Shown here: piece after piece, positions 1,686 to 26,585 of the stretch | Layout of the letters: every line of letters begins with the position of its first letter | Numbering within the stretch: the first letter of the stretch is position 1 | Assembly: GCA_010909165.1 (NCBI GenBank) | Contig: MU008172.1 | Location: 1,302,001-1,366,000, forward strand | Direction: 5' to 3' | Source: Anthoceros angustus | Lineage: Eukaryota; Plantae; Anthocerotophyta | DNA: 64,000 bases | Program-made: the position numbers and the translations under genes | The notes under the pieces: generated by a model | What the model was told of the DNA's origin: nothing | Seen by the model: only the letters and a program-made list of their open reading frames with translations | Database searches by the model: none

Positions 1686-2028
1686 CCAGTATTGGGAAGC
1701 GGGCGCTCGGGGCGCACGGCTCAAGCGGTCGAGGCCGGCATCCGACCCGGGCGCGCGCGCGCGTACGAAACGGCCGAGGCCGGCGGTAGGGGTCGAGACC
1801 GTTCTAGGCCGCGGCGCCCGACGAGCCGCTCCCTCATGTAAGGGAGCGGCCCGGGCCGAGACGCGCCTACCACTCGACTTCGCATCGAGGCGAGCCGAGG
1901 TCGATCTTTAGAATTGTTGCCTTGTGCAACCACTTAAAAGTCTTTTTCTCTCTTTCACGCCACTTTCGCACTTCAGTTTTCACTTTCACTGCACGCTTGC
2001 CTTTTCACGCTTTTGGGATTTATCCTTT

Positions 2029-3674
2029 CTAACTTTCTTCTCGGGCGTTGAAGGGGTGTACACCGCGATTTCGGATCCGCCTGTCTTGAATAATACTTCT
2101 TTGTTCATTATACGGTCCAGATAGAAAGTTAATCATTTCGAAAATTTCGTCCAAACGGGAATATTTCTGCAGGCAATGGTAAATGTTAGATATCGTACAT
2201 ATTAAATTTCACCACTATAAATATGATATACTAACCTCAAATAGTGCAAACAACTCCTTTTGATTCTTCGATAACTACAAACAAAAAAAGCAGTTAATAT
2301 TTTACCTCCATCTCAAGTCGAAGAAGATCTTGCTCAGTAAATACCTTTCTCACTAATGTGAGGCAATGGCTGTGAAGATTTCCCACACTACGGAAATGTG
2401 ATTGGACGTTCTGCAAAGAAGTATCAACGTTAGAATTTGCATATTTGGTAAATACGAATATCAATATTTTCCTTGTTTACATAAATAAATTGTTACGAAC
2501 TAACCTTTTGAATGTTTTTGTAGTTTCGGATCTTCCATCGAGTCAACAAGTCCGTGGTTTTAGCTCCTTATTTTCAATGGTCGATATTTCTACATTACCA
2601 AAACTCAAATTTCATTAGTACTACATAAACCGATTCAAGAACTATACTAAGAATAATATAAACCGATAACACTTACTTTTTGGATCTCCATGTCGCTCTA
2701 GGGTTGTCGACCCATCTTCATTCATTTCATTGGCTGGATCTTTGAGGCTATGTTCCCAAATGGGAACATATCTATTTTAAAATCTTGGAAGACTTGTGGA
2801 TACGAAAGTTATCCATCCATTTTCCAAAATCGCAAATTCTTCGATGGTCCATACGTTGGTGCATTATCTCTTCTTTTTCCTCTTTTGTCCTTTGAAAACA
2901 AGATTGTAAGTTATATACTACTTACAAATATACTAATTATTAATTACAAACATACAACAGCAATTACGATGAAAGATGTGTTGTTGATTTTGTCATCCAT
3001 TGCTTCAATTTTCTCCTTAATTTCCTTAGTCAGAACTTGTTCAAGAGACAGAACAAGGACATTAGTATTTATTACTGTAAACAAATACATATAATCGAGT
3101 TTAGTTGTTTACCTCCAAAATCGATCGAATTGAGATCTTGTCCATTAAACCTCCCACTGAGTCATTGTTTCCAACTCTAATTGAGCCGTTGTTCGGAGAT
3201 TCTTCTTAATATCCTGTAACCATATACAACTAAAGTGAGTTGCGATACCCCCCTGAAAGTTGCGAACCAAGTCTTTACCTTTTTAATTTTTTCCTTAGCA
3301 CCGCAAAGGAGCTGCAAGTCCTTTTGTCCATTGATGTGAACATAGTGTGCTCAGTACTTGTATCAAAGATATCGAGTTAGAAATGTTCATGGAGATTCAA
3401 TTCGAGATTAATTGAAATGTATTACCTTTCTCAACTATCTTCGTATCTCAATGAGAGGATTTGAACTTCACCATCATATCCTGGATCCCCATGGGTGGGA
3501 ACATTGTTGTTTGATCGCCATGTTAAGGTTTGTTGGTCTTTACTATTGTCGCCACTGAAAAAGTCATTTTAGCCATGGATTCATCAACCAAAAATGGATT
3601 TGGCTGAGGCGTAAATGATCATTACCTTCTTGGATGTCGACCATTTCATCGTTGCTCTCATTCTCGGATGCCAT
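2029..3674 (-). CDS. 10-exon gene of unknown function (gene A); a few frameshifts or stops in this sequence
   Basis: Hand-spliced exons 3674-3626, 3554-3426, 3311-3279, 3213-3113, 3074-2968, 2889-2677, 2589-2505, 2410-2306, 2274-2236, 2166-2029, all joined by GT...AG introns. Starts MASENESNDEMVDIQE. The last three exons splice in frame: NVQSHFRSVGNLHSHCLTLVRKVFTEQDLLRLEME|LSKNQKELFALFE|KYSRLDEIFEMINFLSGPY...REES*. Confidence 0.7.
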
Positions 3675-3797
3675 TCGCAATAAAAGCAATCCGTGCCAAT
3701 GAATAACTTGAACTTTTGAAAATGCACGAGGCTGCAGCCATCACGCGCAGTTGTCTTGCTGGTGCGCATGTTGTCCGCATGCGCGTACTTTCAGCTG

Positions 3798-5470
3798 ATA
3801 AAATATACTACGGCAACACAAAGATCGGATATGACTTACGCTAAATGGTTTCGCGCCTCTAAGATATTCGGACATGCAATTTCATTCGAATAGTTAGGAA
3901 AAACAGAAATAAAATATGATTATGGACTTTTGAACCGTCGAGTGATCCAATATCAAGAAAGCGCCCGATGCATGCCACGCTTAACGCGCAGGCGGCATGC
4001 CTATAAATACCTCGCATAAAGTTGACTCGACGTTGTCACGACGCGATGTTGACTCAAACATTGTTGAATGACCACGCCGACTCTAGCTACATTTTGAACC
4101 CGAGGTTTAAAGACAATCGTATGCCTAAGGAAAGGATTTCATTGCATGCGATGCAATTTATAGGTTGAGACGAGCGGTTAGCCTCTCTTGCATGCAGTGG
4201 TGCATACGCGCGCGCTGAGTCACTCAACGGGTTACGTCCGGATGATTAACCGAGATTAAGCGAGAATAAAGAGAGTTAAGCGAGAAAAGCGGATCGAGAA
4301 CTATCAAGACTTGTTAGCGCATCGGTCGAGTAGCGCGACTTTCAGATAAAATATACTACGGCAACACAAAGATCGGATATGACTTACGCTAAATGGTTTC
4401 GCGCCTCTAAGATATTCGGACATGCAATTTCATTCGAATAGTTAGGAAAAACAGAAATAAAATATGATTATGGACTTTTGAACCGTCGAGTGATCCAATA
4501 TCAAGAAAGCGCCCGATGCATGCCACGCTTAACGCGCAGGCGGCATGCCTATAAATACCTCGCATAAAGTTGACTCGACGTTGTCACGACGCGATGTTGA
4601 CTCAAACATTGTTGAATGACCACGCCGACTCTAGCTACATTTTGAACCCGAGGTTTAAAGACAATCGTATGCCTAAGGAAAGGATTTCATTGCATGCGAT
4701 GCAATTTATAGGTTGAGACGAGCGGTTAGCCTCTCTTGCATGCAGTGGTGCATACGCGCGCGCTGAGTCACTCAACGGGTTACGTCCGGATGATTAACCG
4801 AGATTAAGCGAGAATAAAGAGAGTTAAGCGAGAAAAGCGGATCGAGAACTATCAAGACTTGTTAGCGCATCGGTCGAGTAGCGCGACTTTCAGATAAAAT
4901 ATACTACGGCAACACAAAGATCGGATATGACTTACGCTCAAACCGGTTTTGCATGCCTCTAAGATATTCGGACATGCAATTTCGCCCAACGAATAGTTAG
5001 GAAAAACACGGTTAGAAATAAAATATGATTATGGACTTTTGAACTTCGCCGAGTGATCCAATATCAAAGTCGCTGGCCGATGCATGCCACCGCAACGCGC
5101 ATGTTGCGGCATGCCTATAAATACCTCGCATAAAGTTGACTCGACAAGTTGTTGAGACGATGTTGACTCAAACATTGTTGAATGACCAATCGACTCTAGC
5201 TACATTTTGAACCCGAGGTTTAAGACAATCGTATGCCTAAGGAAAGGATCATTTGCATGCGATCGAAATTTATAGGTTGAGAGCAGGCGCAGTAGCCTCT
5301 GATGCGTGTGGCTGCACACGGGCGATGGAGTCACTCTTGAACGGTTACGTCCGGATGATTAACCGAGATTAAGCGAGAATAAAGAGATGGTAAAACGCCA
5401 AGCGATCGAGAACTATCAAGACTTGTTAGCTTTGGGGTCGAGAAGCGACTTTGAAAACGGAAACGAATCA
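3798..5470. repeat. Three tandem copies of a 548-bp unit
   Basis: ataaaatatactacggcaacacaaagatcgg at 3798, 4346 and 4894 (exact 548 period). Copies 1 and 2 are essentially identical; copy 3 has extra bases. Confidence 0.95.
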
Positions 5471-5548
5471 GAAAGATAAGTTCGCTAATTAGGCTTACTG
5501 CTCCCCGATGTCTTCTTGCGTGGACTAAGGGCCGTGTGTAGAGGAGTC

Positions 5549-6030
5549 TCAGGTTTTCTGCAGCAACATTCAAGGTAAGAAAGATGCTTGCAAGCAAACT
5601 TACAGCGATAAGGCTATTCACAAGCAAAGACTGAGGCAAGAGTGCGCGAGACCGAAGCGAGGCGCAAAAAGAATAAAAGACGCCGACGTAAGAGTGTTTG
5701 TCGTCGTCCACGGAGGACGCCAAGGCGAGACCTCTTTGTCTCCTTGGCGCTGGTGAGCGGCTGGCAGACCGTGAGTGGAAACCGTCGCCGAGCGGGAAAA
5801 TCGGGCACACTAAGTTCTTGCACGAGCCCAACTCTTCCGCCAAGTTCGGAACCTTCCAGTGGTATCCTGCAGATGTCAACAAAACATGAGCATAGGCACA
5901 AAGGCAAAGACGACAAACAATTTCAAAGGCAAACAAACTCACCGGCCAAGTTTTCAATTTCAATCGCCGCCTTCAAACGTGTTTTCACCTCCGAGGGCCA
6001 CCACCGATGATGAGGTATGTATTTGTACGC
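5549..6030 (-). CDS. Spliced gene of unknown function (gene B); 5' exon unresolved
   Basis: Exons 6030-5943, 5866-5688 and 5630-5604 join in frame across GT-AG introns: AYKYIPHHRWWPSEVKTRLKAAIEIENLA|GYHWKVPNLAEELGSCKNLVCPIFPLGDG...DDDKHSY|SLLVNSLIA. A further acceptor at 5558 gives a stop at 5549 as written. Confidence 0.55.
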
Positions 6031-6359
6031 CTGAACCAAGGCGAAAGCCACCGGGAGTGTGTTTGATCCGGGCGGACGTCGGGAGAAGGCAAACAAACTC
6101 GCTATTCACTACGAGAAAGGAAGAAAAGGGCGCGTGGTGGGCGGTAGGGCGAGGAACAACCTTGCCGCGAGGTGAGCAATGGACGAGAGAAAGGAGGCAC
6201 TGTCATGCAGGGCGGTAGGGCGAGGTAGGAGCGAACCAGCAGCTGAGCGATGGAACACCAAGAGGACAGCGGGCTGGGCCGAGCGAGTGACGGCCATGGA
6301 AGAAGGTAGAAGGGGGGAGCCTAACGCGCGTGGTGGGCGGTAAAGTAAGTCCGAGGCGT

Positions 6360-6635
6360 GAGTGCTCCTTAAATAGACTTGAATTAGGGTTCGATGCTTA
6401 AGAGCTTGCGGCGGGTTCATTGGCGAGGTTTCGCGCCGCTAAGATTGGAACAAGGTTAGGTGTTGCATGGCTAGGTTTGGAACAAGGTGACTAGGTTCGG
6501 TTGAGGAGGCGCGGCGAATGGCGATCCTAGGTTGGTTTGGTGTCCCTAGAGAGTAGGTTTGGTATTTTCAAATTCGGTGAGAGAGAGTGGCTGACAGAGT
6601 GAGAAGGGTTAGGGTTTGGTGGCCTATATAAACGG
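6360..6635. promoter_or_regulatory. Candidate bidirectional promoter between gene B and the YR gene
   Basis: TATATAAA at 6625-6632 (+) preceded by a telo-box-like GGGTTAGGGTTT; TATTTAA at ~6369-6375 on the minus strand preceded by AACCCTAAT (6383-6391, -). Confidence 0.4.
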
Positions 6636-8845
6636 GTTCACGGACCTCTTTGGTCTTTTTGGTGCTGGGGCTTGGGACCTTCCAGGCTTTCTCCTTCGCC
6701 GCCTCTGCCTCCCTCTACTCCCTCTTTTCTATGTCCCTACGCACACGCTTGACGTCCGATTTCAAGGTTGTTTCGCCAAGTTTCATTCAGCTTTTGTCCG
6801 AGGCCAAGGCGTTGGTTTCTCACTTGTTGCGGTCCGGGCCAAGGTGCTCGCGCCAAGGCGCTTTTGTAAGGTCCAGCCTCCTAGCCCCCTGTTTTTAGTT
6901 GCCTAGCTCTTAGCGTTTCTTTGCGCCTGCCTTGTGGTGTTGCATCATGTCGGGTGATTCTGTTTCGTCTTGTTAGCTTGCCCGGACTGTCTTCTGTAGT
7001 TGGTCAGAGTCCGTTTCCAAGGTTTGATGTGCTTTCGACGGCCGAGGAGTTCTGGTTTCGTTGTTCCTTCGTGGTTTCCTTATGTTTTACGCTTTATGCT
7101 TTCTGGTCCGAAGGCCAAGGTCTTCTTTGTTATTCAAGGTTTCTTTCATTGTTGTTTTGTTCGAGGTCCAAGGGTTTTGCGTTGTCAGTTGTTGCTGTCC
7201 GAAGGCCAAGGTGTCTTGTCGTAACCTCTCATGCGTTTCTGACTATAGTTGTTTTAGCACTCGTTTGTTCTCACTTGCCTCCCACCGCTTGTCCGGCGTG
7301 CGTTTTTTGTGTGCTGCGTGTCTGCTCGTGTTCTCATCTTGTTATTTATGTTTGTACCTCATCATCACTTCCACGCCAGCCGACGGTGAGGCCGCTTTGT
7401 GTGCGCTTGTGAATATGTTATTTTTGCGCCTTGAGCTTTTCTTTTGTGGTATTTGGCCTCACATGTTAATGTGTTGTCCGCTTGTTCACAGCGTTATTCA
7501 CGCTCAAGAGCACGAAGTGCCTTGATGATGTGTAATGTCTTGTCGTGTTTGTCTTGTGTTTTCATCATCTCTGCATTTTCTATATATGCTATGTCGTTTT
7601 AAATGGATCATTTTGTTTCGCTTGGTGTTTATCTCTGTTTAGCTCACGTGTCTGTTGGTGTTTATCACCGACTAGTGTCTTCGTGACGTGTGTTATCTTA
7701 TACTCTCATTGTTGTGTTCTTCTTTGTGAAGTATAAACATTGTCTATCTCGGATACGAAGGCATCGAGCGTGCGTTACGACTTGATTGTTTCTTGACTTT
7801 TGTACATTAGCTCGTCTCTCAAAGTGTTGCGTCCTTAACTCGGTTGTGTTTACGTTATTTATGCTCTTATTTTTCAGTAAGAGCTTGCTTGTTCCATGCA
7901 TCGCGCCTTTGGGCAAAACATTTTAAAGGTATTTGTCTTTTCGATTGTTGTTCACATGTGCGGACAATTATTTGTGGTCTCATGAGTTATCGCTTGCTTT
8001 CTCGCCTTGATGTGTGCGCCATCGCTTGTCCGCGATGGAAGGTAGATCACTTTTGATCTTTTGCTTACCGCTGTCTTTGCTTATCGATGTGCGTGACGCT
8101 TGTTAGTCACCTGTTGTTTCTAATTTGATGTGTGTTTAGTTTAGTGTTTTATGTCGACTTTTGTTCTTGTTGATTGCATCATGTGCTCGTGGTTTGTCTT
8201 TTTGGTCATGGTTGGTGTTGCGGTCCAATGTGGTTCTTGCGCTATGTTAGTTTCATCGATGGTTTGTTGTTAACTCTTGCCTTTTGTGCATCACCCACGA
8301 GAAAATTCTTAGGGTGAATTCGTGGATTTTAGTAAGAGATGTTTACCCTTGCCTTTTGTTTTTTGTCTTGTTGTTCTTGCATAATCAAAATATCCGCACC
8401 TCACTAAATCGTTTCATGTAGGCGAAATTTGTCATCGTGTGAAGGGTCGCTCTTCCAACATTCTAAGTCTGTGGGTATCGTGATAACTATTTGCCCGAGT
8501 TTCTGGTGTTTTCTTCAGTGTTGACCGAGGCTCAAGTTGTGTGTGTCTTTTGTCATCAATATTATTGGCAAAAGAGTGTTTGTGAAGTATGTGGGTTTGT
8601 TAAAAATGGAAGTTTCGTTCTCTAACTTAAAATGGAGGGATCAAAATCTAACGTGTATAGATCAAAGGATGTGTCTCGCAATATCTCCCATGCCTCTTCT
8701 TTTCGATTGTGGTATAATCAACTTTTAGACCCTTCAGAGTTCTCATTTGAAAGCATTCACCTCCATGTAAGTCTTTTCATATTGGTTTGCAAGTTCATTA
8801 ACTTTTCAAATGTTTTTGTGTTTTGATCACATGCTTTTCTTTGCG

Positions 8846-11800
8846 ATGGCACCCAAAAGGAAACCCACTGCTTGGACCGGAAAGAAGCAAGGGTCCTGTC
8901 AAGTCATGGCTAAGCCGCACACTAGGGTGTCACCGCCCTCCACATCGCAACTCATCCACCGCAGGATGATGGTAAAGTTGATGGTGTCTTGGTGCAGTGA
9001 AGGAACATATTTAGTTCCAAAAAGGCATTCCTAAACCGCCAAGGCACTTCTCATCCAAGAAGGATGCTCGACGTGAAGTTTGTAAGAGAAGAAGGGTTGA
9101 CACTCGACTGTGGCATTGGTTGAAGGTCCTCTTGGAGATTACTAACTATGTCCCGTTGTCTCGAGAGAGGGTCCGGTTGTGGGGGAGAATGATTTCTTGA
9201 TAACGACGATCCCATGGTTGTGAGGCCGCCAAAGCCTCGAGTCTAGAGATTTGTGTGGTTGAACTTTTACTGGTGGCGCTTTCCATGCTTTGGTTCCCGA
9301 CCGAGTCATCCCCGATCAAGAAGTGCTCGATATGTTTGAGAGGCTAAAGTGTGCCGGTCCCAAGATGACTTTGCCATGGGTATGGAGGAAATTGATGATG
9401 AAGAAATTTTCGAGAGCGTGATTTGACCGTCCCCGTGAGGGAGCTGTGAATGATGCTTTGAGTGGTGGGGAGGATAGGTCAAACGCGTAATAACCGTGTC
9501 AAGTCGCCCTGTGGCCTTTATGAAAGTGAGTGGGGTCGGATGGGATACTGCTTGAGGATATTCCTTACAAGGATCTAAATCTTATTCGATACCCTTTTTC
9601 CATCAAGTTCGAATCAAGGACAACAGGAGATTTTCTCGTAAACGTAAGTAGTGATGTTTTCTTACTTGTTGATTTTGATAGTTCGACTTTCCTTCACATG
9701 ACCGATTCCGATCTTCACTTGTGCGGTGATGTCTTTCTTTCGTGGTTTAACCGGATTTTAACAAGGAAGTGCATCCCAACCAAAGCCGCTTGGTTCGATG
9801 TTCCTGATCAACTTGTTTCATGGAATTTTCCATGGCCTGTCAATGGTTGCGTCCATGAAAATCAAAGGACCTTGGGATTGTGTCATGTCGAAAAGAGGTG
9901 AAGTTGATTTCTGATGATGATGAGCGACTGATTCTTTCACACAGAGATCATCAATGCTCATTTGGGCGGGGGGCTCTGAAAAGGTAATATTGTTGGTTTT
10001 GGGGGTGCACTTTGATTGTTCATTTATGGTCTCTTAAACCTGGAGCCCTTATGCTTATATTGTTTGCAGGTGTGCATATTTTTGCATGACCAGGTTTGGA
10101 GTTCGAGGTGGTGAAGAGTTACATAACCTGCTCATTAGGGACTTCTCATTTGCATCGATTCAAAAGGACCTTTTGTTCAAGAGGGTGTAGTCTTTTGTTC
10201 TTGTTTGTTTGATGTTTTGATGTATCAGATTGAGCTCGTCTTCATTTGCGTGTATGAAGAACGATTCAAAAATTACAAAGTGGATATGAAGAACTACGAG
10301 TGAGCATTTCAAAAGGTCAAGATCTATGAAAAGGACGTCATCGAAACCTTTAAAGCTGTTATTGATCACTCTCCCAAGTGGTCTGCACATGACAAGAATT
10401 TGTCAATTCAGGGGTTTCTCTTCAATTCAACCATTGATAACCCAAGATCCAATGTAAGTTTTTGGTTTATTGGGCTTGAGTTTTGTGGTTTGTATTTACT
10501 AACTGTTTGTTTTTTGTTCAGGCTTGGTATGCAAAACTTCGTGTTTCAAAAGGAATGTTGTCAAGATTTATGAAGACCATGGTGAAGTAGCTGGGCTTGT
10601 TGGCTACTACACCAATAAGAGCTGCCGTGTAACGATGATTACACGTTTGACGATGGCTCAGGTGCCCTCTGATGCTGGGAGAAGTGTGACTGGCCATAAA
10701 ACGGATGCTGGATTTTCAAGGTAATATGTTGTGAAAGCTTGTGACATTTGAGTCTTTGTATGCTCGTCCTAACGTTCTCATATGTTTTGCAGATATGACC
10801 GTTCTGGTCAAGCAAAACAGGCAGCTGCTGCAAGAGTTCTTGTTCCTGGTGAACGACGATCTTATCAGGAGCTTTTAAATGAAGAACTCAATCGGATGCA
10901 GGATGATTTAAGGGGTGTTCTTCCGTCAACAGTGTTGAATGTAACTCCTGAAATAGTATTTTCGAGTCAGCCTGAAGATCAGCGTCCCTTGCAAGTGCAA
11001 CACGTTAGTAATGTAAGTGTTTGAGATTTGTATCAAGTATGTAGGGACTTGTGTCAAAATCGTGTCGACTTGTTTGATGTGTCTCTCGTGGCTACCTCGT
11101 TATTCATCATGAAAGGCACGAACAATGTTGGACCGAATCGAGTTTTTCCGCACCATGTGGTCCACGTGTCTTGAAGTTCGTTGGTATTGTGAAGTTGCTT
11201 TGTTGTAGTCCGCCATGTTAGTTTTTTTTAATCATACTGGTTCTTGTTTTTATTGGCAGGCACCTTCTGAAAGCTGTTGCCAAGGCATCCAGATGGACAC
11301 TAGCAGACCAACGACAGGGTGTTCTACTGAAATTCCATATGTTGACAAGGTTGATTCTTTGGCTGTTTGTTGTTTTCATTCATTTTGGAGTTTCCTGATT
11401 GTGTTCTTCTTGGCAGATTGTGAATCCTTCGACTAGTTTAAGCTTACGTCCCTCATTTCAACATTGACACGAGGGAAGTGGATGCGCCCTCCGTTGGAGG
11501 GCATTGCAGTGAGTGTGATCCATCCGAAGTTAACCAGACAGTGTGGCCGTGGTAGCACCTCGATATATTGCACGGATCGCAAATGGAAATGTAAGTGGCT
11601 TTGAGCGCTTGCCGATCTCCCGAGAACGGAATTGGAGAATGACAAATTGAAACAGAAATGGAGTTCGTGCAAAAGGATTTGGAGGCACTTATAGAGAGAC
11701 AGAGGCGCGTTGAATTACGAGTCTCTAAGCAAAGAGAGAAAGCCCTTGAGATTCGTGAGGCGAGAAATGCGGAGAGGAGACAAGAGCATATTAAGCATCA

Positions 11801-12141
11801 AGAGAAAAGGGCGCAGCAGAAGAGCGCAAGAGGTTCGGAGATTGGGGAAAGACAACAGGAGCAGAAGGATGTGCCTCGAGATATGTCAACTGCTATCTGC
11901 GAAAATCCGTCGGGATCGGTAAGCTTTATGCTTTTATTAATCAGTTTTACTAGATTGAAAATTAATGGTTGTGTTGTTTTAGGTTGTGACCTTGCAGGAA
12001 GATGGTCAATTTCGCCCAAGTCCTCAGCTTCATCAATTGGTTGCCAATTATGATAATGCTGTACAAGTACCAATCAAGCCAAGTGGTCGTGAAAATTACA
12101 TTTTCAATCTGTATAATTGTACAGTAAATTTCCCAAAATAA
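8846..12141 (+). CDS. Intron-containing Crypton-type / DUF3504-like tyrosine recombinase; frameshifts and one in-frame stop in this sequence
   Basis: Spliced translation gives FFHQVRIKD (core-binding), CAYFCMTRFGVRGGEELHNL (R at 10104), YEERFKNY (K), AWYAKLRVSKGMLSRFMKTM, AGLVGYYTNKSCRVTMITRL (R at 10626), VTGHKTDAGFSR|YDRS (H at 10695, Y at 10794) and C-terminal FNLYNCTVNFPK* (stop 12139-12141). Introns include donors at 9644, 9984, 10185, 10454, 10721. The order and spacing match the R-K-HxxR-H-Y YR catalytic set. ATG at 8846 is inferred. Confidence 0.85.
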
Positions 12142-13088
12142 GGTGAGTATCAATGTTTTTATTTTTAGTGTTTACTAGTAGCAGCGTAATTGAGGTTTGG
12201 GTGCTAATTTTGGTTTTGTTTGTAGGTTTCTTGTTGAAGCGAGTTCACTATATCGGTATTTACTCTTCATTAGTTGAATTCAGATTTCATGCACGGATAT
12301 ACAGGAAACTCGCAAAGAAAAGGTTCTTTGTTGGTTTTTTGTATATCCTGGATCCGCATGAATATTATTTAACAGAAAATGTTTTTGTCAGATTAGCGAT
12401 TTTGGTGGGATTTCTAGAATGAGCTTACTAGACGCACCTGGTTTTCACTTGGTCGTCATGTTTTCTACTCTAGTGCTCTGTTTTCCACCTTGATGGTAGA
12501 TCATATTCACCCCACTTGGCATGTTTTCTACTATATTGTAATGAATTTTACTATACTGTGTAAAATAATGGCCAAAAGGTCGATTCTCTCTTAAAATTCA
12601 CCTGCACTACCCCGAAAAAAAACCAACGGTAGCGTGAGGCCCCTGCACGAGGCAGCGACTTCCACGATTTTACGTGGTGCCGACCAGAGTGAACGGGTGG
12701 AAGGTTAAGAAGTACCTTCAACCCAAGGTACCTGTTGTTTGCGAGGACGCAAACAGGTGAGGAGGGGAGTATGTGGAACGCAAAAGTTTGGGCAACCAGC
12801 CCAAACGAGCCGGAGGGAGAACGAACTTGATTTTTTTTTGGCTAGGAACGATTGAAAAGAAGCATGCCAGGAAATTTCTGAAAGTCTTGGAGCTAGAGCT
12901 GTAAAATATTGTTAGGAAGACGAAGAGGATATCCCATGAAGAAGAACGTCAAAACCCCCATTTGCGCGCGGGGAGGGCAGTCCGAAGGTTGGTAGGTCGG
13001 CGACTATCACCGAGGGTCGCCACACACGCCCGTAGGTCAGAAAGAAGGACCATGTAAGTGGCAGACTACCATAGAGACGAACCTCGCA

Positions 13089-16000
13089 AAAAGGAAATTA
13101 GGATAAGGGGGATATCCACTATGCTCACCAATAGGGAGATAATAGGATTAATTAGAAGGTAATTAATTTGAGGTCATGGATAGGAAAATAGGTAATTGGC
13201 GTGCTTGGTAATTTAGGATGTTGAACCGGATCTAGGGTTGGGAACTCCGTGGCGCAATCCAAGAGGGCAAAGTGCAATTTGGCGCCAACTTCCTTCGAAT
13301 CGAGCCAACTTACTCGATCGAGCCGAGCGTAACCACAAGGAGAAGGAAAAGGAGGGAGAAGTGTAGACTGCCATCGCCATCGCTGTCGCCGCCATCTACG
13401 CCCAAGAGGAAGACGGTCCGCGAGCTGAAGAAGGGAAGGAAGCCCAATCATGGCGGAGCGAGGAACATCCGACAAAGACCGAGGAAGCTGCTCGGCGAAG
13501 TGAGAAGCACGCCAAGCACTGGAGAGAAGAGCCGACGGAGGGCCCCCAGAGCAATCAAGTGAAGGCCGGAAGGTCAAAGAAAGGAGCTCCACACGCTTCA
13601 CCGCCCGCGCCTTGCGGAGGAGAAATCGCGAAGGGGAAATTGGCGCCGTGGTTCGCACTGTGGCTAACGTTTGTGCCTGTGTTGGGTGTTGCTCCTAGTG
13701 ACAAGGAAGGTTGGTAGGTCGGGACTATCGCCGTGAGGTACGCCACACCACGCCCGATGGTGGGAAATGAAGCGACTTCGTGGTAAGCTTGGCGAGACTA
13801 CCACGATAGTGTGTCAGCGTAAAAGGAAATTAGGATAAGGGGGATATCCACTATATATGCTCACCAATGGGGAGGCGACCAATAGATTAATTAGAAGGTA
13901 ATTAATTTGAGGGCTGCGGATAGAGAAAGTAGGTAATTGGCGGGGCTTGGTAATTTAGGATGTTGAACCGGATCTAGGGTTGGGAACTCCGTGGCGCAAT
14001 CCAAGAGGGCAAAGTGCAATTTGGCGCCAACTTCCTTCGAATCGAGCCAACTTACTCGATCGAGCCGAGCGTAACCACAAGGAGAAGGAAAAGGAGGAGA
14101 AGTGTAGATCGCCATCCATCGCCGCCGCCATCTACGCCCAAGAGGAAGACGGTCCGCGATCAAGAAGGGGAAGGAAGCCCAATCATGGCGGAGAGGAAGA
14201 CATCCGACAAAGACCGAGGAAGCTGCTCGGCGAAGTGAGAAGCACGCCAAGCACTGGAGAGAAGAGCCGACGGAGGGCCCCCAGAGCAATCAAGTGAAGG
14301 CCGGAAGGTCAAAGAAAGGAGCTCCACACGCTTCACCGCCCGCGCCTTGCGGAGGAGAAATCGCGAAGGGGAAATTGGCGCCGTGGTTCGCACTGTGGCT
14401 AACGTTTGTGCCTGTGTTGGGTGTTGCTCCTAGTGACAAGGAAGGTTGGTAGGTCGGCACTATCACCGTAGGTCGCCACACTACGGTAGGTCGAAAGAGC
14501 GACTACCGTGGTGTTGGCGTCATCAATGGCAGACGACAACTCTCAAAAAGGAAATTAGGATAAGGGGGATATCCACTATATATGCTCACCAATAGGGAAT
14601 AAATTAATTAGAAGGTAATTAATTAGGAGCGGGCGGATAGAAAATAGGTAGTTTAGATGCTTAGGTAATTTAGGATGTTGAACCGGATCTAGGGTTGGGA
14701 ACTCTCCAGTGGCGCAATCCAAGAGGGCAAAGTGCTTTGGGCGCAACTTCCTTCGAAGAGCAACTTCGCGACCGAGCCGAGCGTAACCACAAGGAGAAGG
14801 AAAAGGAGGAGAAGTGTAGACCGCCATCGCATCACGCCGCCGCCATCTACGCCCAAGAGGAAGACGGCCGCGCGAAGGGGAAGGAGTAGCGAGCGGAGCA
14901 AGAGAGGAAGACATCCGACAAGGGTGCCGTGCGCGAAGTGAGAAGCACGCCGCCAAGGAGAGCCGGAAAGCGAGGAGGGCCCCAGAGCAAAGGCTGAAGG
15001 CCGGAAGGTCGGGGAGCGGAGCTCCACACCGACCGCCTCCGGAGGAGAAATCGCGAAGGGGAAATTGGGCCGGGTTCGACTGGCTAACGTGATTGTGCCT
15101 CAGTTGGGTGTTGCTCCTAGTGACAAGGAAGGAGTGCTTGGGAGTGAAGCTTTGGAGCACAACGCTTGAATTGGAAAGTAATTTGGAAGTAAGGAAGGTG
15201 CCATGCCGCCGCCTGAAAGGCAAGGGAAGGAGCCGCCAAGGGTTCCTCAGGAGGAAGGAGAAGAAGGCGGCAGCAGAGGCCGCCGGGGAAATGAAGCGAC
15301 TTCGTGGTAAGCTTGGCGAGACTACCACGATAGTGTGTCAGCGTAAAAGGAAATTAGGATAAGGGGGATATCCACTATATATGCTCACCAATGGGGAGGC
15401 GACCAATAGATTAATTAGAAGGTAATTAATTTGAGGGCTGCGGATAGAGAAAGTAGGTAATTGGCGGGGCTTGGTAATTTAGGATGTTGAACCGGATCTA
15501 GGGTTGGGAACTCTCCAGTGGCGCAATCCAAGAGGCAAAGTGCAATTTGGGCGCCAACTTCCTTCGAATAACTTCACTTCGATGGGCTGGGCGTAACCAC
15601 AAGGAGAAGGAAAAGGAGGAGAAGTGACCCATTGCCATAGCCGCCATCTACGCCCAAGAGGAAGGCAGTCCATGATCCCAGAAGGGGAAGGAGGTGGCCA
15701 AGGCATGGCGGGAGCGAGAGGCATCAGCCGGACAAGCGATGCGAAGTCTTCTCCTCAGCGCAACTGTGAGAAGCACGCCATGCCTGGAGGCTGGGCGAGT
15801 CAGAGCCACGGAGGGCCCAGTGCTCAAGGCATGAAGGCTGGAAGGTCGAAAAAGCGGAAAGGAGCTCCACGGCATTTCACCGTAGGCGCCTTGCCACAGA
15901 GGAGAAATCGCGAAGGAAAGTTAGCGGCGGAGAGTTCGAGACCAGGCTAGCAGTACTTGTGCCTCGGGTTGGGTGTTGCTCCTAGTGACAAGGAAGCGCT

Positions 16001-16150
16001 TGGGAGTGAAGCTTTGGAGCACACAACGCTTGAATTGGAAAGTAATTCTCTTTGGAAGTAAGGAAGGTGTCACGCCTAGGAAGCAAGGGAAGAGCCGCAC
16101 CTTAGGGTTCTTCCTGAGGAGGCAGGAGAAGAAAGTGAAATGCACGCCTT
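13089..16150. repeat. Four tandem copies of a ~730-800 bp unit
   Basis: aaaaggaaattaggataagggggatatccact recurs at ~13089, ~13822, ~14546 and ~15345 with colinear downstream sequence. Confidence 0.9.
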
Positions 16151-19100
16151 GAGGAAATGAGCTTGTAATGCCCCAATTTACGTGTTTTCTGAGGGCAGCT
16201 CAACCCCGTGATTTAGTGGATTTCCGCAATGGGCGTAAGAGGATAATATCCAGTTGGGATGGGTGTATGGCCAATGGGCCTACACCAATTTGGAGTCGAT
16301 TGAGGGCTTCATCAATCTCCATCAATCGTAGGCAGCCCTTGCAGTCGAAAGGAATGCTCGAACGGATCCTCCATTGTTGGACCGTAAGGAGCATTCGGCG
16401 TGTACGGGAGGAGGAAAGCTCGAATTGCTCTCTCGAAAGGTCGAATGGAGGAAGAGGACGCCCTCTCCGATTCCGCAAGAGCCTCGACATGATGGAGGAG
16501 GAAGGCCCATGCCAAGAATGGCTGGAAAAGAGCATCAAGGAGTCAAGTGGAGGCTCTTCAAGATTGTGTTGGGGTAAATTACCAGGACGCCTATTTCAAA
16601 GACCAACTTCGCAATTTTGTGGAAGATTTCGAGAGGAGCCAAGCCGATTGGGGCACCATCATGTATGAGGCCTACATCCACCAGAGAAGCTCCTCAAGCC
16701 AAATTGTGGATGAGGAAGGCCAAGGCTCTACCTTAGCACCTATTTGGTGCATTTGTGGGAAACAAGGGCTTCTCACAAGCAAGGAGTTGGAAGATGCTTG
16801 GCATCCTTGAGATAATCCATCTCCAGCTTGGAAAGGCCTTTGCCTTTGCATTGAGGAAGACAAGGGGAGGTCGACTCCACAAGCATGCTAGGAGCAAGGG
16901 AGGAGGAGGCAACAAGGTTGCCGAGTGGGAATCTTTTCCCCACAAGAGCAAGAGGAGAGGAAGAACCGCCGAGGAAGGCCGAATGGTAGTCTATGAGAGG
17001 AGGACTACCACAGAGGGGTGATGCCCCAAGGGTGGGGAGTCCCCACCATCTCATCTTTGGGAGAGGCACCCCACACCTCACCCAGGGGAGGCACCACCCA
17101 AGGTGCGATCAGGAGCGCCCACCATGGTAGGTAGGCGTACTCACCAGGGGAGCACCACCGCTGTAGGCACCCACGCCAGAGGTGGCCCAGGAAAGGGGAA
17201 GGGGCGCATGAGAGCCGCGGGCGGCGCCGAGGCCACCATCTCCGCTGGAGGAAGAGCGGATGGAGCGACGGTGAGGGACTCCACCGCTGATGGCCGAGGC
17301 AAGAGAGCTGAGATTTCCAGCAAGAAGAAAGTGGAATTGGGCCCCTAGGAGAATTGGCCGAGTGCTTGTGAAGCACTCACCGTGTGGATTTGAAGGGGCT
17401 AGGAGCCAGCCTCCTTGTGGGCCAAGAGGAAGTGAAAGCCCAAGACATGGCCGGAGGAAGGCAGGACCAAGTGGCAATTGAGGCCATGGAGTCCGGGCAG
17501 CCAAATTGGAGAAGGTCAGAGAAGCTCCAACACCTCATGGAGAGCCGAGAAGGTCCTAGAGGGAAGGTTGTCACATCAAGAAAGAGCTATTCGGGCAACA
17601 ACCCAAAGGGACATGGAGGTATATGAGGAGCATTTTGCCCAATTAGAGCAAGAGCGAGGGCAAACGAGGTTAGGAAGGAGAAGCTCCCAAGGACGAAGAG
17701 TGTGTGATGGCTACCCAAGCCATCAAGATCCGGACATGGAAAGGAATCCGGACCTCAATTTGGAAGAGAAGCGCTGAGGCTCAAGACCAAGACTGCAAGA
17801 GTTGGAGCGCGAAAAGAGTGCTTGGCAAGAGAGAGACCAAGATGGCCGAATTGGAACAAAGGAGGTTCCAAGAGGAGGAGCACCACAAGAAGGTGGTACA
17901 CAGGATGCTGGTGGTGAGAAAGCGATTTTGGGCGGACTATGCCCTTCAAAATGGCCAACCAAAGGAAGTGAGGGAGGAGAATGTGACCTCCATGTCAAGG
18001 TGGGGAATTGACCACCCAAGGGACGCCTACAAGGTAGGTGAAGATGGAGAGTGGCCCACTGAGATTGATGATCTCCAAATGCAATATCATAGCTTGGGGC
18101 TCACCTCCACAATAGATTTTGAAGGCCAACAATGAGATTCGCTTGGCCAAGAGGAGGACATTGGGTCCTCATGATGATGACAAAAGGAGTCAGAAGTGTG
18201 CAGAGGCCTCCGATTTTGATGAGGCCATCAAAATGGACTCCGAGGAACTGAGGAGTCGAGATGGGGAGCGCAGAGCGCCAAGGGTGGAAGATGGCGCGAG
18301 AGCAAGGAGGGGGAGCCCACCTCCGGGGTCAACCTACCACGAGGGGTGACCACGTAGTCCGCCAGCACCGTGGTGTGCCACCACGCCTAGTCCGCTGCTA
18401 CCGAGGGCGTGCGGGCGCAGAGCTGGGAGTCGCCGCCAAGGCCCCGGCCGAGGATGAAGGAGCCGGGGGTCCGAGTATACCCCTGAGGAGCAACTGAGGT
18501 GGTGGGGAGACAACCCCACCTGAGGAGACTAAAGACGGGTCCGACCACGAGGAAGGGAGGGGAAGTTCTCCCCACGAAGGGGAAGGCTGTGAGAGAGTCC
18601 AATGCAAAAGGGCCCGGAGTTAGACAGACAAATTGAGGGAGGAAGAACCTTTGAGATGCCCATGATAGGTATGGACAACCAACAAGAGGAAAGGAGCAAG
18701 ATTCCAACCCAAGAGGCCAGATGGAGAAAGAAGGAAAGGGCCGACTACCATGGTAACCACCCCTAGTCCGCCGCATCAGCGGTAGGGTGCGATGACGAGC
18801 GACCAGCAGAGGCTGGAGAAAAGGCGCGGGCGGGAGGGCGCGATTGCCGGGGGACTGAGAACTGGCGCCGCCTGGAGATGGAGGAAGGGGCAGATTGTAC
18901 TTGCCCCACACATTAGGAAGATGACAAGATCGGGAAGGAAGAGCAAAAGGAGGGCGAGGGAGCCAATCCACAAGGAGAAGGAAAGGAGGGAGAAGTGTAG
19001 ATCGCCATCGCCGCCGCCATCTACGCCCAAGAGGAAGACGGGCCAAGAAGAAGGAAGGAGCCCCAAAGCAGGCGTGGAGCGCGAGGAAGACATCCGAGCA

Positions 19101-22100
19101 TGAGAAGTCTTCTGTGAATGAGAAGCACGCCACAATGAGAGTGGAAGCAGCACGACGGAGGGCCTCGCCGAGCAAAGGCGGAAGGGGAAGCTGAAAGGAG
19201 CTCCACACCAGACGGCGCCTTGCCCGGGAGGAGAAATCGCAAGGGAAATTGGCGCCAAGGTTCACCGGCTAACGCGACTTGTGCGTTGTGTTGCTCCCAG
19301 TGACAAGGAAGGAGTGCTTGGGAGTGAAGCTTTGGTCCAACGCTAATTGAGTAATTCTCGCTAAGTAAGGAAGGTGCCATGCCTGGAAGAGCAAGGGAAG
19401 GAGCCGCCAAGGGTTCTTCCTCGCGAGGAGGCAGGAGAAGAAGGCGGCAGCAGGGGCGCCCGCCAGGGGAAATGAGCTTGTAATGCCCCAATTCACGTGT
19501 TTTGCGGCGTACCAACCCCGGATTTAGTGATTTCGCAATGGGCGAGGAGGATAATATCCTGATGGGTGTATGCAATGGCCTACACCAATTTGGAGTTGAT
19601 TGAGGAGTGTTCATCAATCTCCATCAATCGAGGCAGCCTTGCCGTACCGGAAAAGGAATGCTCGAACGGATCCTCTGACCGTAAGAAGCATTCGACAGTG
19701 TATGGAGACCGGAGGAGCTCGAATTGCTTCCTCGAAAGGTCGAATGGAGGAAGAGGACGGCCCTCCGACATTCCGCAAGAGCTCGACATGATGGACGAGA
19801 GTGAAGGCCCATGCCAAGAATGGCTGGAAAAGAAGCATCAAAGAGAGTGGAGGCTCTTTGCAAGATTGTGTTGGGGTTGGTAAATTACGAGGACATTTAT
19901 TTAAGACCAACTTCCTCCAATTTTGTGGAAGATTTCGAGAGGAGCCAAGCCGATTGGCACCATCATGTATGAGGCCTACATCCACCACCGGAAAAGCTCC
20001 TCAAGCCAAATTCGTGGATGAGGAAGGCCAAGGCCTCGCTACCTTAGCACCTATTTGGTGCATTTGTGGAAACGGAAGGGCTTCTCACAAGCAAGAGTTG
20101 GAAGATGCTTGGCATCCTTTGAGATAATTCATCTCCAGCCAGCTTGGAAAGGCCTTGCCTTTGCCTTGAGAAGATGGGAGGTCGACTCCACACATGCTAG
20201 AGCAAGGGAGGAGGATGGAGGCAACAAGTTGTGAGTGGGAATCTTTTCCCACCGAGCAAGAAAAAGAGGAGAGGAACAAGAACCGCCGAGGCCGAATGGG
20301 TCATGAGAGGAGGACTACCAGGAGGGGTGATAGCCCCAAGGGTGGGGAGTCCCCACCATCCCTTTGTGCCTAGCAGGAGGCACCGCCACTACCCCAGGGA
20401 GGCACCACCCAAGTGGGCGGCATCAGTGAGACCACCACGTAGGGTGCACTACCGCCAGGAGCACCTCACCGCCAGTAGGCGCACCCCACGCCAGGTGCAC
20501 ACGGTAGGAAGGGGAAGGAGAAGCCGGAGCTGCCGCGGCGCCTAAGCCACCACCACCCGCTGGAGGAGAGCGGATGGAGCGACGGTGAGGGACCACGCCG
20601 ATGGTCCGCTGAGGCAAGAGAGCTGAGATTTCAAAGAAGAGGGAATTTGGGCCCTAGGAGAATTTGCCGAGTGCTTGTGAAGCACTCACTGCAGGTGGAT
20701 TAAAGGGCTAGGAGCTAGCAGCTTCCTTGTGGGCATGCCAAGAGGAAGTGAAATCCCAAGACATGGCCGGGAGGAAGGCAGGGACTAAGTGGCAGCTAGA
20801 AGCCATGGAGTCCGACGAGAAGGCAGCCAAATTGGAGAAGGCTGTAGAGAAGCTCCGCGACCTCATGGATGAGCGGCGCGCGGGAAAAGTCCTAGAGGGG
20901 AAGATGTCACAAACCGAAGAAAGAGCTATTCGGGCAACAACCCAAAGGGACTCTTGGAGGCAAAAGGCGGAGGAGCATTTTGCCCAATTGGAGCAAGAAA
21001 GGAGGAAGGCACGAGGCATTAGAAGGGAGAAGGTATCGCCAAGTGACGCCAAGAAGAGCGGTGTGATGGCTACCCAAGCCATCAAAATCCGGACATGAAG
21101 GAAGCGGACCCAGACAACTGGAAGAGAGCGCTGAGCCGGGAGGCTCAAGACCAAGAACAAGAGAGTTGGAGCGCGAAAAAGATGCTTGGCGAGGAGAGGG
21201 CTTGCCAAGAGGACTGGAACAAAGGAGGTTCCAGAGGAGGAGCACCACAAGAAGGTGGTACAATGCCGGGTAGTAAGGAAACGAAGATTTTGGCATTATG
21301 CCCTGTGCAAAGATGGCCAACCAAATAAAAGAAGTGAGGGAGGAGAATGTGACCTCCATGTCAAGGTGGGGAATTGACCACCTCAAGGGATGCCTACAAA
21401 GGGGAAGATGGAGAGTGGCCCACGAGATTGATGATCTCCAAATGCAATATCATAGCTTGGGGCTCACCTCCACAATAGATTTTGAAGGCCAACAATGAGA
21501 TCTGGCTTGGCCAAGAGGAGGACATTGGGTCCTCATGATGATGATGAAGGAGCCGCAAGCAGCCTGAGGCCTCGATTTTGATGAGGCCATCAAAAATGGA
21601 CTCCGAGGAACTGAGGAGTCGAGATGGGAGCTCAGAGCCCAAGGGTGGGAAGATGGCGCGAGAGCAAGGAGGGGAGCACCTCCGGGGTCAACCTACTTGG
21701 GGTGACCACCACTACAGTCCGCGCTACCGCAGACAAATTACCACGCCCTAGTCCGCTGATCACCGGAGTAGGGCTGTGCGGGCCAGAGCTCGAGGGGAGC
21801 AAGGCCCGGGCCGAGGATGAAGGAGCCGGGGTCCGAGTATACCCCTGAGGAGCAGAGGTGGTGAGGAGACAACCCACCGAGGAGACTAAGACGGGGTCCG
21901 ACCGAGGAAGGGGAGGGTGAGAAGTTCCCGCCCACGATAAGGGAAGAGCTGTGGCCGGGAGGAGTCCAATGCAAAAAGGCCCAGAAGTTAGACATCACAA
22001 CAATTGAGGGAGGAAGAACCTTTGAGAACGCCCATGATAGGTATGGACAAATTAAACAAGAGGAAAGGAGCAAGATTCACCCAAGAGGCAACAGATGGAG

Positions 22101-22349
22101 AAAGAAGGAAAAGGTCGACTACCATGAAAGTCACCACCCTTAGTCCGCGACTACCGCGTAGGGTGCCGATGACGGGCCACCAGCGAGACGGAGAAAAGGC
22201 GCCAGCGCGGAGGGGGGCGCGACCGATGAAGAGGAATCAGGGCGCCTGAGATGGAGGAAGGGGCAATTGTACTTGCCCCACACATCTAGGAAGGCGACAA
22301 GATCCGGGAAGGGACAGAGCAAAAGGAGGGCGAGGAGCCAATCCACAAG
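15597..22349. repeat. Tandem duplication of ~3.37 kb
   Basis: ccacaag anchors at 15597, 18968 and 22343; aaatgagcttgtaatgcccca at ~16156 and ~19470; colinear ORF fragments in both copies. Confidence 0.9.
16150..18950 (+). pseudogene. Frameshifted accessory ORF of the gypsy element (unknown N-terminal domain, Pro-rich linker, coiled coil); second copy at ~19470-22340
   Basis: Fragments GVNYQDAYFKDQLRNFVEDFER and AMESDEKAAKLEKAVEKLRDLMDERRAGKVLEGKMSQTEERAIRATTQRDSWRQKAEEHFAQLEQERRK are conserved between copies. No gag, PR or RT motifs seen. Confidence 0.5.
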
Positions 22350-24857
22350 AGACACGCCGCCACCCCAAAGAAGATAAGGACTAAGAATGGTCAATGACCA
22401 TAAATGAGCTTTGGGAATGGGAAGGATAGGTGGTGTAGGACATCCTTAAGGATGATCTTAGGTGAAGTTGCTAGAATAGAATTTACCAACTGGACAATAG
22501 ATTTAGATGCCAGCCTTAAATGTCAAGTGTAGGAAATAATAGAAATTGGAAAAGGTGACCGCAGAGGGGTCACCTAAGGGGAGGTTGTATGTGGAAGGCC
22601 TCCTATAAGAGGAGGAGGATTTCACAAAGTAAAGTATCACTATGCGCCCACCCTCATCGAGTCCTTTGCCATTACAGAGGAATTTCGTGCGGCCGTGAGC
22701 CAACGCTGGGTAGAGAGGAAGTCGTGGTCTGAGTGTTGGTGGAGGACTTGCTCACGCAAGTGCCTAAACGAGTTGCTCCTTGTGAATGGTTGCGTGAAAT
22801 TGCTTTGCTTTGGGTGTGTGGCAATGCCTGTGAACACTGAGATTGATCCGTAGACTGGAGGTGCTCCGAATGGTGTCAAACTCAGCAACCGCCCAAGGAA
22901 GAACTTGCTGGTGGAGGCCGACCCTGTGCGCCAGCTGGCAGGGCGAGTCAAGCCAAGTCAACCGAGGTTAGAATAGGAGGAAGAGGATGAGAAGATGAGA
23001 AGATGAGTAGAGGATTAGAGGTGTAGGTGTTAGTGGAAGGCCAGGCGGGACGAATCCCAACTGCAAGTAAAGAGCGCCCGAGTGGAGAAGAGTGGTCTTA
23101 AGTAGGGACGAAATCTGTGTGGACTGGGGTCCTGGCGCCCGTGATAGGCTCTCACACGAGGCAGACCCGCAATTGTGTGTGTCGCTGTAGGTTGAGGATT
23201 GGCGATTTTTCGCAAGCAGGGGCAAGAGGGTGAGTAGAGGGCGCCTTGCTCGCTGAGAAGGCGAGAATTTGTGTCTCGCAGTAGCGACGCCATCACAAGA
23301 CCAACTTTCACACAAGTCTCATGGGACAAACCCAACGACGGCGACAAAGTGAGATAAGTGTGGCCGCTATAGTGGGAGGACCTGAGTGCCCCGGTTTTCC
23401 TACCACAATCCTAAGACTATACCTCGCCTGGGAATCCTACAAGACTTTGTTTCTTAGACATTTGGCACAATAATATCTTCCTGACCGATGTTTCTTGATT
23501 CGCCCCGCAATGCGAACGAAGTGGTATGGTGTGCACTTGGAGTCGGGCCCAAGCCAAATGTCTAAAGATTCAAAAGATGCACAAGGTTCTCTCTATTGTT
23601 TTGCCGTTGTTTGAGGTTTTGTTTTGTTTTATGTTTTATGTTTTATTCTTTTTTGCTTTATTATGCCTTAATTTTGTTGTGCTAGTGGTTTAATTTATAT
23701 TATTGTAGTAATGTTTTTTCCGTTTGGCCATGAAATTTGAAAATGGAGATAAGATGAGAATCCCAATGCTTATGTATTCACAAGAAAAGCCCAAAGTAGG
23801 TCAAACCTGCTATTCCACAACGCAAAGTCTCTCACGACTAACCTCTTATCCTACAAGTCTAGGTTTGTTTTACGCTCTACGTAGTTTGATAGTCCTTGAA
23901 ATCATCCTTGAAATCATGATGAGTAGTTCTTTATGTAAAGTGTACAAATTGGATGGTCTCATCTACACTAAAGTATTGGGGTCTCCTAATTGCCGCTTGC
24001 AATATTGGGCACCTTGATAAAGATTTCGTGCCAAACTAGATATCTGAATGGCTCCTTTTGATGAAGGTTTGAATGCCATGGACAGCCCTTAGTAAGAAGC
24101 AGTTTTGGGAGGCCATCGTGAGCTTCAACATAAAAGGTTCGTGGCAATCAAGGCCAGCCTTAAGTTGACGTAAGTTTAGCACGCAATTCATAACATTAAT
24201 AAGGTTAAAACTATGACCATGTTACCACATTTGGGCTGAAGTGTTAGGCATGACATTGCTTAGTTCACGTACAAAAGTTCATCAAGGAACGAAACAAATG
24301 CCTTTGTCTAATCACGTGGTAACTATTTCCCACATCAACTTCTATTCCTACAGCATTTGGTGTAGTTTAGTTCTCCAATTGACATGTTGTACATTAAGAA
24401 GGCAAGGTGAGGAGACTTAATTATTAAGTTGCACAACCATGCCATTTTGTTACTAAGATGGACCAATACGAGCAGCGTGAAAGAAATTCAAAGATACCAC
24501 AAAAGAAAATACCAAATATAAATATAATATCGCTACCACAAGAAAACAATTAGAACATGCTGGAAAGGAAATATCATATATCCATTAATAGTATGTATTA
24601 CAAGAAAAACAACTTGAACGTGCCATAAAGGAAATATCAAATATCCATTTATAGTACCTATCACAAGAAAAAACAATTTGAAGATGCTAGAAAGGAAATA
24701 TCAAATATCCCTGTATAGTATCTAGTATTCAAGGTCATCTATAAAGGAGCCATCATCTAAGTGGTTGGTTGAGTTGCCCACCTGCAACGCTTGCACCTTA
24801 GGAAAGCCTAACAAGAAGTGGTTTGTTGTTGCTCATCCTCGCCACGCTCCACCTCGA

Positions 24858-26399: not shown

Positions 26400-26585
26400 T
26401 AATAACGAAGAAGAAGAAGAGGAAGAAGATGAAGAAGAAGAAGAAAGAAGAAGAACAAGAAGAGAAGAAGAAGAAGAAGAAGAAGAGAAGAGGAAGAAGA
26501 AGAACAAGATGAAGAGGAAGAAGAAGAAGAAGAACAACAACAAGAACAACAAGAAGAAGAAGATGAAGAAGATGAAGAAGAAATT
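26400..26585. repeat. (GAA)n-rich microsatellite; also at ~30038-30225, ~33403-33585, ~37050-37230, each preceded by a G-rich tract
   Basis: Long gaagaagaa runs with aac variants; poly-G at ~26150-26190, ~29795, ~33175-33225, ~36828-36870. Confidence 0.95.

Follow-up and report, generated by a model that had tools for sequence, protein, structure and literature searches.

Cryptons have been described from fungi, animals, oomycetes and diatoms (PMC3212892) and are active in Chlamydomonas (PMC9977147); movement of CryptonF-1_cRei, a green-lineage Crypton with introns from Chlamydomonas reinhardtii, has been observed to occur by site-specific recombination at the short target CAYCG (PMC9977147). 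A 2022 review of land-plant transposable elements includes no tyrosine-recombinase elements, places DIRS "only in green algae" and leaves Cryptons unmentioned (PMC9033089). We found no paper describing a land-plant Crypton family, with Repbase and subscription journals outside the search, in agreement with an earlier first-pass annotation of the locus discussed here, which knew of no characterised land-plant family. This locus belongs to a 64,000-nt stretch of the Anthoceros angustus genome (contig MU008172.1, positions 1,302,001 to 1,366,000; "the window" below, numbered from its first letter). Positions 8846-12141 of its plus strand carry a decayed, intron-bearing copy of a tyrosine-recombinase gene inside a multi-copy repeat of about 3.9 kb, probably a relic left by a lineage of Crypton-like DNA transposons in seedless land plants.

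The closest described systems are the Crypton-A/DUF3504 recombinases of animals (Kojima & Jurka 2011, PMC3212892). They have catalytic boxes of the same order and wording, ..YTN(H/K)S.R.T.. and then TGH(K/R).....Y, and an N-terminal helical domain with T.KS..W....F..W, which is also present in the TNKS clade, as we call the plant-type proteins with a TNKSxR box to which the window copy belongs; they are also the best matches by sequence search, by a plant-only profile and by protein-atlas features. The TNKS clade differs from them in having Lys for the His of the HxxR motif, a long coiled-coil tail, sub-threshold Pfam DUF3504 scores and one conserved intron, with many more in the lineage of the window copy, and it forms a separate clade (Shimodaira-Hasegawa-like approximate likelihood-ratio test, SH-aLRT, 97). 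Glomhopper, a DUF3504 Crypton-A subfamily of Glomeromycota, fungi symbiotic with bryophytes and ferns, is like the TNKS clade multi-copy, often intron-containing and mostly truncated, with the catalytic residues retained (PMC13465315); Glomhoppers match the DUF3504 profile whereas the TNKS clade does not, a comparison made from the published description. CryptonF-1_cRei has an F-type recombinase and a chlorophyte host, whereas the window element is known here from sequence alone. DIRS, Ngaro and PAT elements have the tyrosine-recombinase catalytic domain in common with the window gene, but they carry reverse transcriptase (RT) and RNase H and an intronless recombinase open reading frame (ORF), whereas the window unit has no RT and many sense-strand introns. 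Xer/Cre-type recombinases and type IB topoisomerases share the fold family and the catalytic layout, with only remote similarity (archaeal XerA, E 0.37).

Anatomy and decay of the window copy

Judged by its sequence, the window gene is a tyrosine-recombinase gene split by introns. The motifs named in the first-pass annotation all lie on the plus strand, in the order given there, within 10098-10808: FGVRGGEE (10098-10121), FKN (10265-10273), TNKSCR (10608-10625), TGH (10689-10697) and RYDRS, the last interrupted between R and YDRS by the intron 10721-10792. The splice donors proposed at 9984, 10454 and 10721 are correct to within 1 nt (GT at 9985, 10454 and 10721). Splicing out 9985-10069, 10454-10521 and 10721-10792 yields a gap-free alignment with the relatives described below, which bears out the claim that the gene is split by many introns; in total the window copy has 9-10 introns in sense orientation. 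The features, all on the plus strand, are as follows.

8788-12651, plus strand: repeat unit holding the whole recombinase gene, delimited by contig matches of DNA run X1, with edges good to bins of ~180 nt
8846-8972, plus strand: putative exon 1 with ATG, a basic KRK stretch and a GT donor at 8973 (weak homology)
9389-9984, plus strand: remnant of the N-terminal (core-binding-like) domain with LEDIPYKDL, FNRILTRK and KLISDDDE pieces (family profile match)
~9607/9644-9681, plus strand: intron inside the N-terminal remnant
9985-10069, plus strand: intron, GT..AG, 85 nt, absent from relatives; its removal joins GALKR to CAYFCMTRFGVRGGEE in frame
10070-10184, plus strand: exon with the first catalytic Arg, in FGVRGGEE (Arg codon 10107-10109)
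10185-10234, plus strand: intron at the sole position common to all relatives (after ..LR and before Y DETLSKNH); candidate 3' edges 10228, 10234 or none
10235-10453, plus strand: exon with the beta-hairpin Lys (FKN), carrying an in-frame TGA
10454-10521, plus strand: intron, GT..AG, 68 nt, absent from relatives
10522-10720, plus strand: exon with TNKSCR (the Lys replacing the HxxR His, plus the second Arg) and TGH, with a frameshift at ~10585
10721-10792, plus strand: intron, GT..AG, 72 nt, phase 2, splitting the Arg codon that precedes the catalytic Tyr; absent from relatives
10793-11015, plus strand: exon opening with (R)YDRS, which contains the catalytic Tyr, and running into the C-terminal tail
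11016-12141, plus strand: C-terminal tail in several exons, the last at 11983-12141 with the stop codon at 12139-12141
11658-11918, plus strand: coiled-coil stretch within the C-terminal tail

The window's own pieces match the family profile with an independent E-value (i-E) of 7e-13, and the copy is 44% identical to the family consensus over 346 positions. It keeps every catalytic residue as a codon: Arg, Lys, Lys (at the HxxR His position)..Arg, His and Tyr. In the N-terminal part the family profile matches 9877-9999 (i-E 5e-7); the relatives also begin with a basic stretch, KRAxSGKR, whose homology to the window exon 8846-8972 is weak. Near the other end the profile weakly matches 11721-11822, at the family's FAMQK..LALLRREN region, which makes the gene end proposed earlier (12141) plausible. 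The conserved intron reads CTCAG/GTACAA...CTCAG/GTATGAC in the relative L011 (slashes at the splice borders); in the window copy both the ancestral donor and the ancestral acceptor look mutated, so that the 3' edge of the intron 10185-10234 is uncertain. The Pfam check proposed in the first-pass annotation gave no match with the window's exon pieces alone. An exact look-up of the 131-aa ORF found no record; there is no second copy within the window, and a six-frame profile scan of it found no further fragment.

The window copy is a pseudogene of a multi-copy repeat, and because of its stops and frameshifts it is unable to supply a working enzyme. An in-frame TGA (10301-10303) lies between the catalytic Lys and conserved downstream residues that share one frame. 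At ~10585 the reading passes from frame 1 to frame 0, between ...FMKTM and AGLVGYYTNKSCR, where the distances conserved in the relatives are too short to accommodate an intron. The N-terminal domain (~9389-9984) has frame changes at ~9488, ~9538, ~9818 and ~9858 and a stop at 9419, and the frames of the tail are partly broken at ~11430-11650. The earlier claim that hand splicing recovers a recombinase is therefore right for the motifs and introns and wrong for the reading frame, which is broken by the TGA, the frameshift and at least four N-terminal frame changes: the observation was real but overstated, because the copy is a pseudogene.

One could suppose instead that the gene is intact and functional, and that its stop and frameshifts either arose in assembly or are avoided through splicing. 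All catalytic codons are indeed kept, and indel noise remains conceivable because the contig table contains many 1-nt indel differences between copies. Such an explanation would need at least five frame changes plus two stops over ~1.3 kb; it also has to face a TGA inside a single frame, the mutated ancestral splice sites of the conserved intron, the long branch of the copy in our tree (0.9) and the lack of any matching contig for the gene in run X2. We regard it as already disfavoured and very improbable. X2, the sole RNA-type run listed for the same sample, matches 12686-12800 and not the recombinase gene; this is its only match in 7500-13000, and it falls in the repeat that adjoins the recombinase unit on the right.

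At 9978, 10093 and 10912 nearly all of the paralogous X1 contig depth is one base shorter than the window (at 10093, in the exon of the first catalytic Arg, 898 of 913 lack one window base), and most other copies may therefore carry frameshifts that are absent from the window copy.

Relatives and family assignment

A 47-residue piece (10581-10721), used as a phmmer query against 1.84 billion representative proteins, found only two of them. P0001 is an animal-type fragment (TNHSLRAT..TGHRS, E 5.5e-6; Phage_integrase 36 bits), and P0002 is 57% identical to the piece, with the same TNKSxR, TGHK and RYDRS boxes. Wider searches raised the number of proteins with the TNKSxR box, a small family, to ~36, which come from Logan assemblies, ENA assemblies and JGI metagenomes, and in all of these plant-type sequences Lys replaces the HxxR His. 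The relatives consist of a long N-terminal ORF, with a variable acidic region, a helical domain (T.KSN.W..NRFN.W) and F.IRG..ELY.L, and a second ORF of 450-490 residues with DETLSKNH, TNKSGR, TGHKN and RYDR/RYNR, followed by a coiled-coil tail and a conserved C-terminal motif. Their one intron is always placed between ..LR and Y. P0043 adjoins a leucine-rich-repeat receptor kinase, a plant-type O-methyltransferase (PF08100+PF00891) and a serpin, and P0006 adjoins an alcohol dehydrogenase; from these neighbours we conclude that the contigs of the relatives are plant genomes.

Among the relatives, synonymous divergence (dS) is saturated, nonsynonymous divergence (dN) is 0.14-0.6 and dN/dS is at most 0.15, so the protein was under selection while the lineages diverged. 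Almost every sampled relative has a stop or frameshift of its own, and no whole open coding sequence has so far come to light, the C-terminal ORF P0025 alone being open. L007 and L011, from one other organism, are ~98% alike and carry different single lesions, and the run that gave L011 also holds a divergent paralogue, L006.

Profile matches point to a tyrosine recombinase. Against the Pfam cut-off of 27.1 bits for Phage_integrase (PF00589), P0006 passes with 30.4 bits and five other relatives score 21-26 bits (P0003, P0004, P0025 and P0002 at 22.7-26.3). In a profile search of PDB the only match was archaeal XerA (E 0.37), and in its alignment with the profile of the catalytic part the family's K falls on the HxxR His, while R, GH and Y each meet the same residues of XerA.

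Several independent lines, individually modest, link the family to the Crypton-A/DUF3504 type. We consider the strongest to be the plant-only profile, which scores animal proteins annotated with PF12012 and PF00589 at 20-55 bits; 17 PF12012-annotated proteins score 27-52 bits with it. The direct phmmer match to P0001 is a further line. Both halves of the protein have DUF3504/QRICH1 clusters as protein-atlas neighbours (0.96-0.97, 178-181 shared features). Among 16 N-terminal members, DUF3504 and QRICH1 are the only families that recur, both weakly: DUF3504 with E 0.006-0.036 (best 0.006), and the QRICH1-type N-terminal domain PF25561 with E 0.099-0.14 in 2 of the 16. A tree of 101 catalytic cores, restricted to the TNKS and TNHS groups and with the window copy read through with X at its breaks, separates 27 TNKS rows, the window copy included, from the TNHS rows (SH-aLRT 97), and places the window copy next to P0084 and P0087. 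On these comparisons the TNKS family is a sister-like, plant-type clade whose nearest named relatives are animal Crypton-A/DUF3504-type recombinases.

The relative L010, on an ENA contig of 353 kb, has its exons scattered across 14 kb (4026-17932), and between them lie a gypsy element (4822-9128, minus strand) and a pogo-like element with HTH_Tnp_Tc5 and DDE_1 (12023-13873). In the relative P0013 (Logan) the middle of the N-terminal domain is absent (columns 440-505 of alignment A3), with ..INSA joined to RRFVLFATS..; this may reflect exon skipping or a deletion.

The repeat unit and its probable nature

DNA run X1, from the same organism and assembled as Logan contigs, contains 708 short contigs that are 90-100% alike to the window over 8788-13000, of which 227 show at least 99% identity. 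Depth is 0 over 7500-8603 and 1.35 in the bin 8604-8787, and one paralogous contig (record 8) aligns over 12481-12621 and then diverges. From this pattern it follows that the gene sits in a multi-copy unit of ~3.9 kb, from ~8790 to 12620-12660. The recombinase is the only enzyme domain in 8788-12651, which has neither an RT nor a DDE transposase, and the loci of the relatives have no RT in matching orientation. The gene does not stand beside a DIRS-type RT, and the sense-strand introns and the missing RT favour a DNA element over a DIRS element.

The same data bear on the suggestion that the gene is the recombinase of a DIRS-like retrotransposon or is foreign DNA, for instance a contaminant or a sequence recently acquired from an animal or from an arbuscular-mycorrhizal fungus (Glomhopper). 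Its nearest named relatives do come from animals, and Glomhoppers are DUF3504 Crypton-A elements of Glomeromycota, the symbionts of bryophytes (PMC13465315). However, the unit lacks RNase H and methyltransferase as well as RT, sense-strand introns could not survive retrotransposition, and the window copy groups with the plant-context TNKS sequences and not with the TNHS sequences. It moreover has other repeats on either side within its contig and occurs in many copies in the DNA run of the same organism. We therefore see this suggestion as already disfavoured and as having hardly any chance of being correct.

If the unit derives from a Crypton-like DNA transposon, its intact members would, by analogy with Cryptons, excise the element as a circle, and site-specific recombination would put it back elsewhere. 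Catalysis would be carried out by Arg (F.xRG), Lys (SKNH/FKN), Lys..Arg (TNKSxR), His (TGH) and, as nucleophile, Tyr (RYDR/RYNR), with the Lys of TNKSxR presumably standing in for the usual His. Vaccinia topoisomerase IB has a Lys, K220, at the place of the HxxR His of recombinases, so that Lys at that position would be compatible with catalysis.

Several points weigh against the origin from a Crypton-like transposon. No family member reaches the Pfam DUF3504 (PF12012) cut-off of 29.7 bits (best 14.6 bits, E 0.036, the N-terminal part of L007), for which reason we do not file the family as DUF3504; of the earlier assignment to the Crypton/DUF3504 type, what stands is the identity of the nearest named relatives, animal Crypton-A/DUF3504 proteins. 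The tree sets the TNKS group against the TNHS group only. AlphaFold models were too poor to use (pLDDT, the predicted local distance difference test, 54.6 for the N-terminal and 46.6 for the catalytic C-terminal part), and a fold search of Swiss-Prot gave no significant match, with KIAA1958 only at E 0.4. The summed X1 depth over 8788-13000, tens to hundreds, does not give the number of copies, and the assembly may itself derive from the sample of run X1. There is little room for a promoter, because just ~60 nt separate the sharp left edge from the ATG. With one copy in the window, no element termini, target-site repeats or empty sites were found. The ends show nothing but a perfect inverted repeat of 13 nt (8834-8846 / 12310-12322; ~0.13 such pairs expected by chance), which is a possible terminal feature or nothing. 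Finally, the conserved intron, the long conserved C-terminal tail and the position of relatives between host genes would be consistent with a host gene family as well.

This last point leads to the reading of the window copy not as a transposon relic but as a dead paralogue from a family of host genes that seedless plants domesticated from a recombinase (compare ZMYM/QRICH1 and ALOG). The intron position common to all relatives, the conserved blocks of the tail and the strong purifying selection agree with it, as do the ordinary plant genes around P0006 and P0043, found in the same context in many samples, and the exons of L010, which stay open despite the transposons in its introns. On the other side, the catalytic residues are all kept across the clade, unlike in the domesticated animal DUF3504 genes (PMC3212892). 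Also on that side are the many copies in this genome that are 90-100% alike, the private stop or frameshift of almost every sampled relative, and several divergent paralogues per organism (L006 and L011 from one run). We consider the host-gene explanation unlikely, and the decay of a Crypton-like transposon lineage the probable history of the unit.

A wider proposal, which we put forward tentatively as a serious possibility, is that an undescribed clade of Crypton-like DNA transposons is peculiar to seedless land plants, characterised by the HxxR His-to-Lys change, one ancient intron and a coiled-coil tail. It would have been amplified recently in this genome (copies at least 99% alike) and would comprise the first recombinase-mobilised elements recognised in embryophytes, of which intact members may be active or co-opted. 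If true, the plant mobilome would gain a class so far missing from it, in the form of a multi-copy, plant-specific relative of Crypton-A/DUF3504. The TNKS clade would also offer a natural His-to-Lys variant of the recombinase active site, and it would be a new candidate for the kind of source from which DNA-binding genes have been domesticated, as with ZMYM/QRICH1 in animals and ALOG in plants. The window locus itself is only a fossil, valuable because it adds a dated copy and points to the family.

Two details at the left side of the unit may be added. The 8834-8846 arm of the inverted repeat stands just before the ATG, and its partner at 12310-12322 falls in the most repeated 3' segment, within a hairpin with 25-nt arms (12295-12348). 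Further upstream, an ORF at 8632-8766 ends in a GTAAGT donor and has weak DNA similarity to the exon of the first catalytic Arg (8737-8759 against 10140-10162, 78%) and to 11865-11887 (83%); as a relative of that exon it was rejected, since the family profile did not confirm it.

Surroundings in the 64-kb window

The recombinase unit lies at the right end of an 11-kb block between what look like parts of a decayed gypsy element. Regions resembling a gypsy integrase C-terminus occur at 1503-1685 and 12668-12757, apparently split by the block, and GPYEVVAVYENGSW (1640-1685) and VVPTRVNGWKVKKY (12674-12715, by eye only) read like the left and right halves of a split integrase C-terminus around 1686-12660. 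Positions 1-32 of 64 of Pfam SH3_Tf2-1 match 1503-1682 (E 0.06). This arrangement would suit a recombinase gene that is not an autonomous 3.9-kb Crypton but travels as a passenger, or as one module, in something larger and composite (the 1686-12660 block, or a large transposon of DDE type). However, 7500-8787, inside the block, has no matching contigs, in contrast to the hundreds for the recombinase part. By tblastx, the 1.5-13.2 kb block showed no flanking gene in common with the locus of any relative; the ORFs of the block have no DDE or RPA domain, and the right half of the SH3 domain finds no confirmation in Pfam. We think a composite element quite unlikely and, because 7500-8787 is not multi-copy, no flanking genes are shared with the relatives' loci and the right half is unconfirmed by Pfam, do not treat the 11-kb block as the mobile unit. 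CGTGGT, at 1678-1683 and 12673-12678, was rejected as a target-site duplication: the match is at chance level, and joining the two sides there gives the wrong frame and spacing.

The SAUR and PPR fragments that the first-pass annotation had listed as neighbours were not found in the window by motif search, and none of its long ORFs matched a plant host family in Pfam. The window's own sequence thus gives no sign of the host, and the evidence for a land plant is indirect, drawn from the neighbours of the relatives. Scans of the window with Rfam and for tRNAs also returned nothing. A multi-exon orphan gene with no recognisable domain occupies 2029-3674 on the minus strand, starting with MASENESNDEMVDIQEG at 3674. 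Repeats elsewhere in the window are as follows.

3781-5452: tandem array, three copies of ~552 bp
12984-16133: tandem array with a period of ~730 bp
15597-22349: tandem repeat, two copies of ~3.4 kb
23396-39007: macrosatellite of ~3.6 kb
57100-60350, minus strand: Copia-type remnant (Pfam RVT_2, SH3_retrovirus, Pol_BBD)

At 39079-39123, ~70 nt past the end of the macrosatellite (23.4-39.0 kb), there is a second LLPTMVNGWKV-KYLH fragment of the same gypsy family; thus two copies are interrupted at about the same integrase position.

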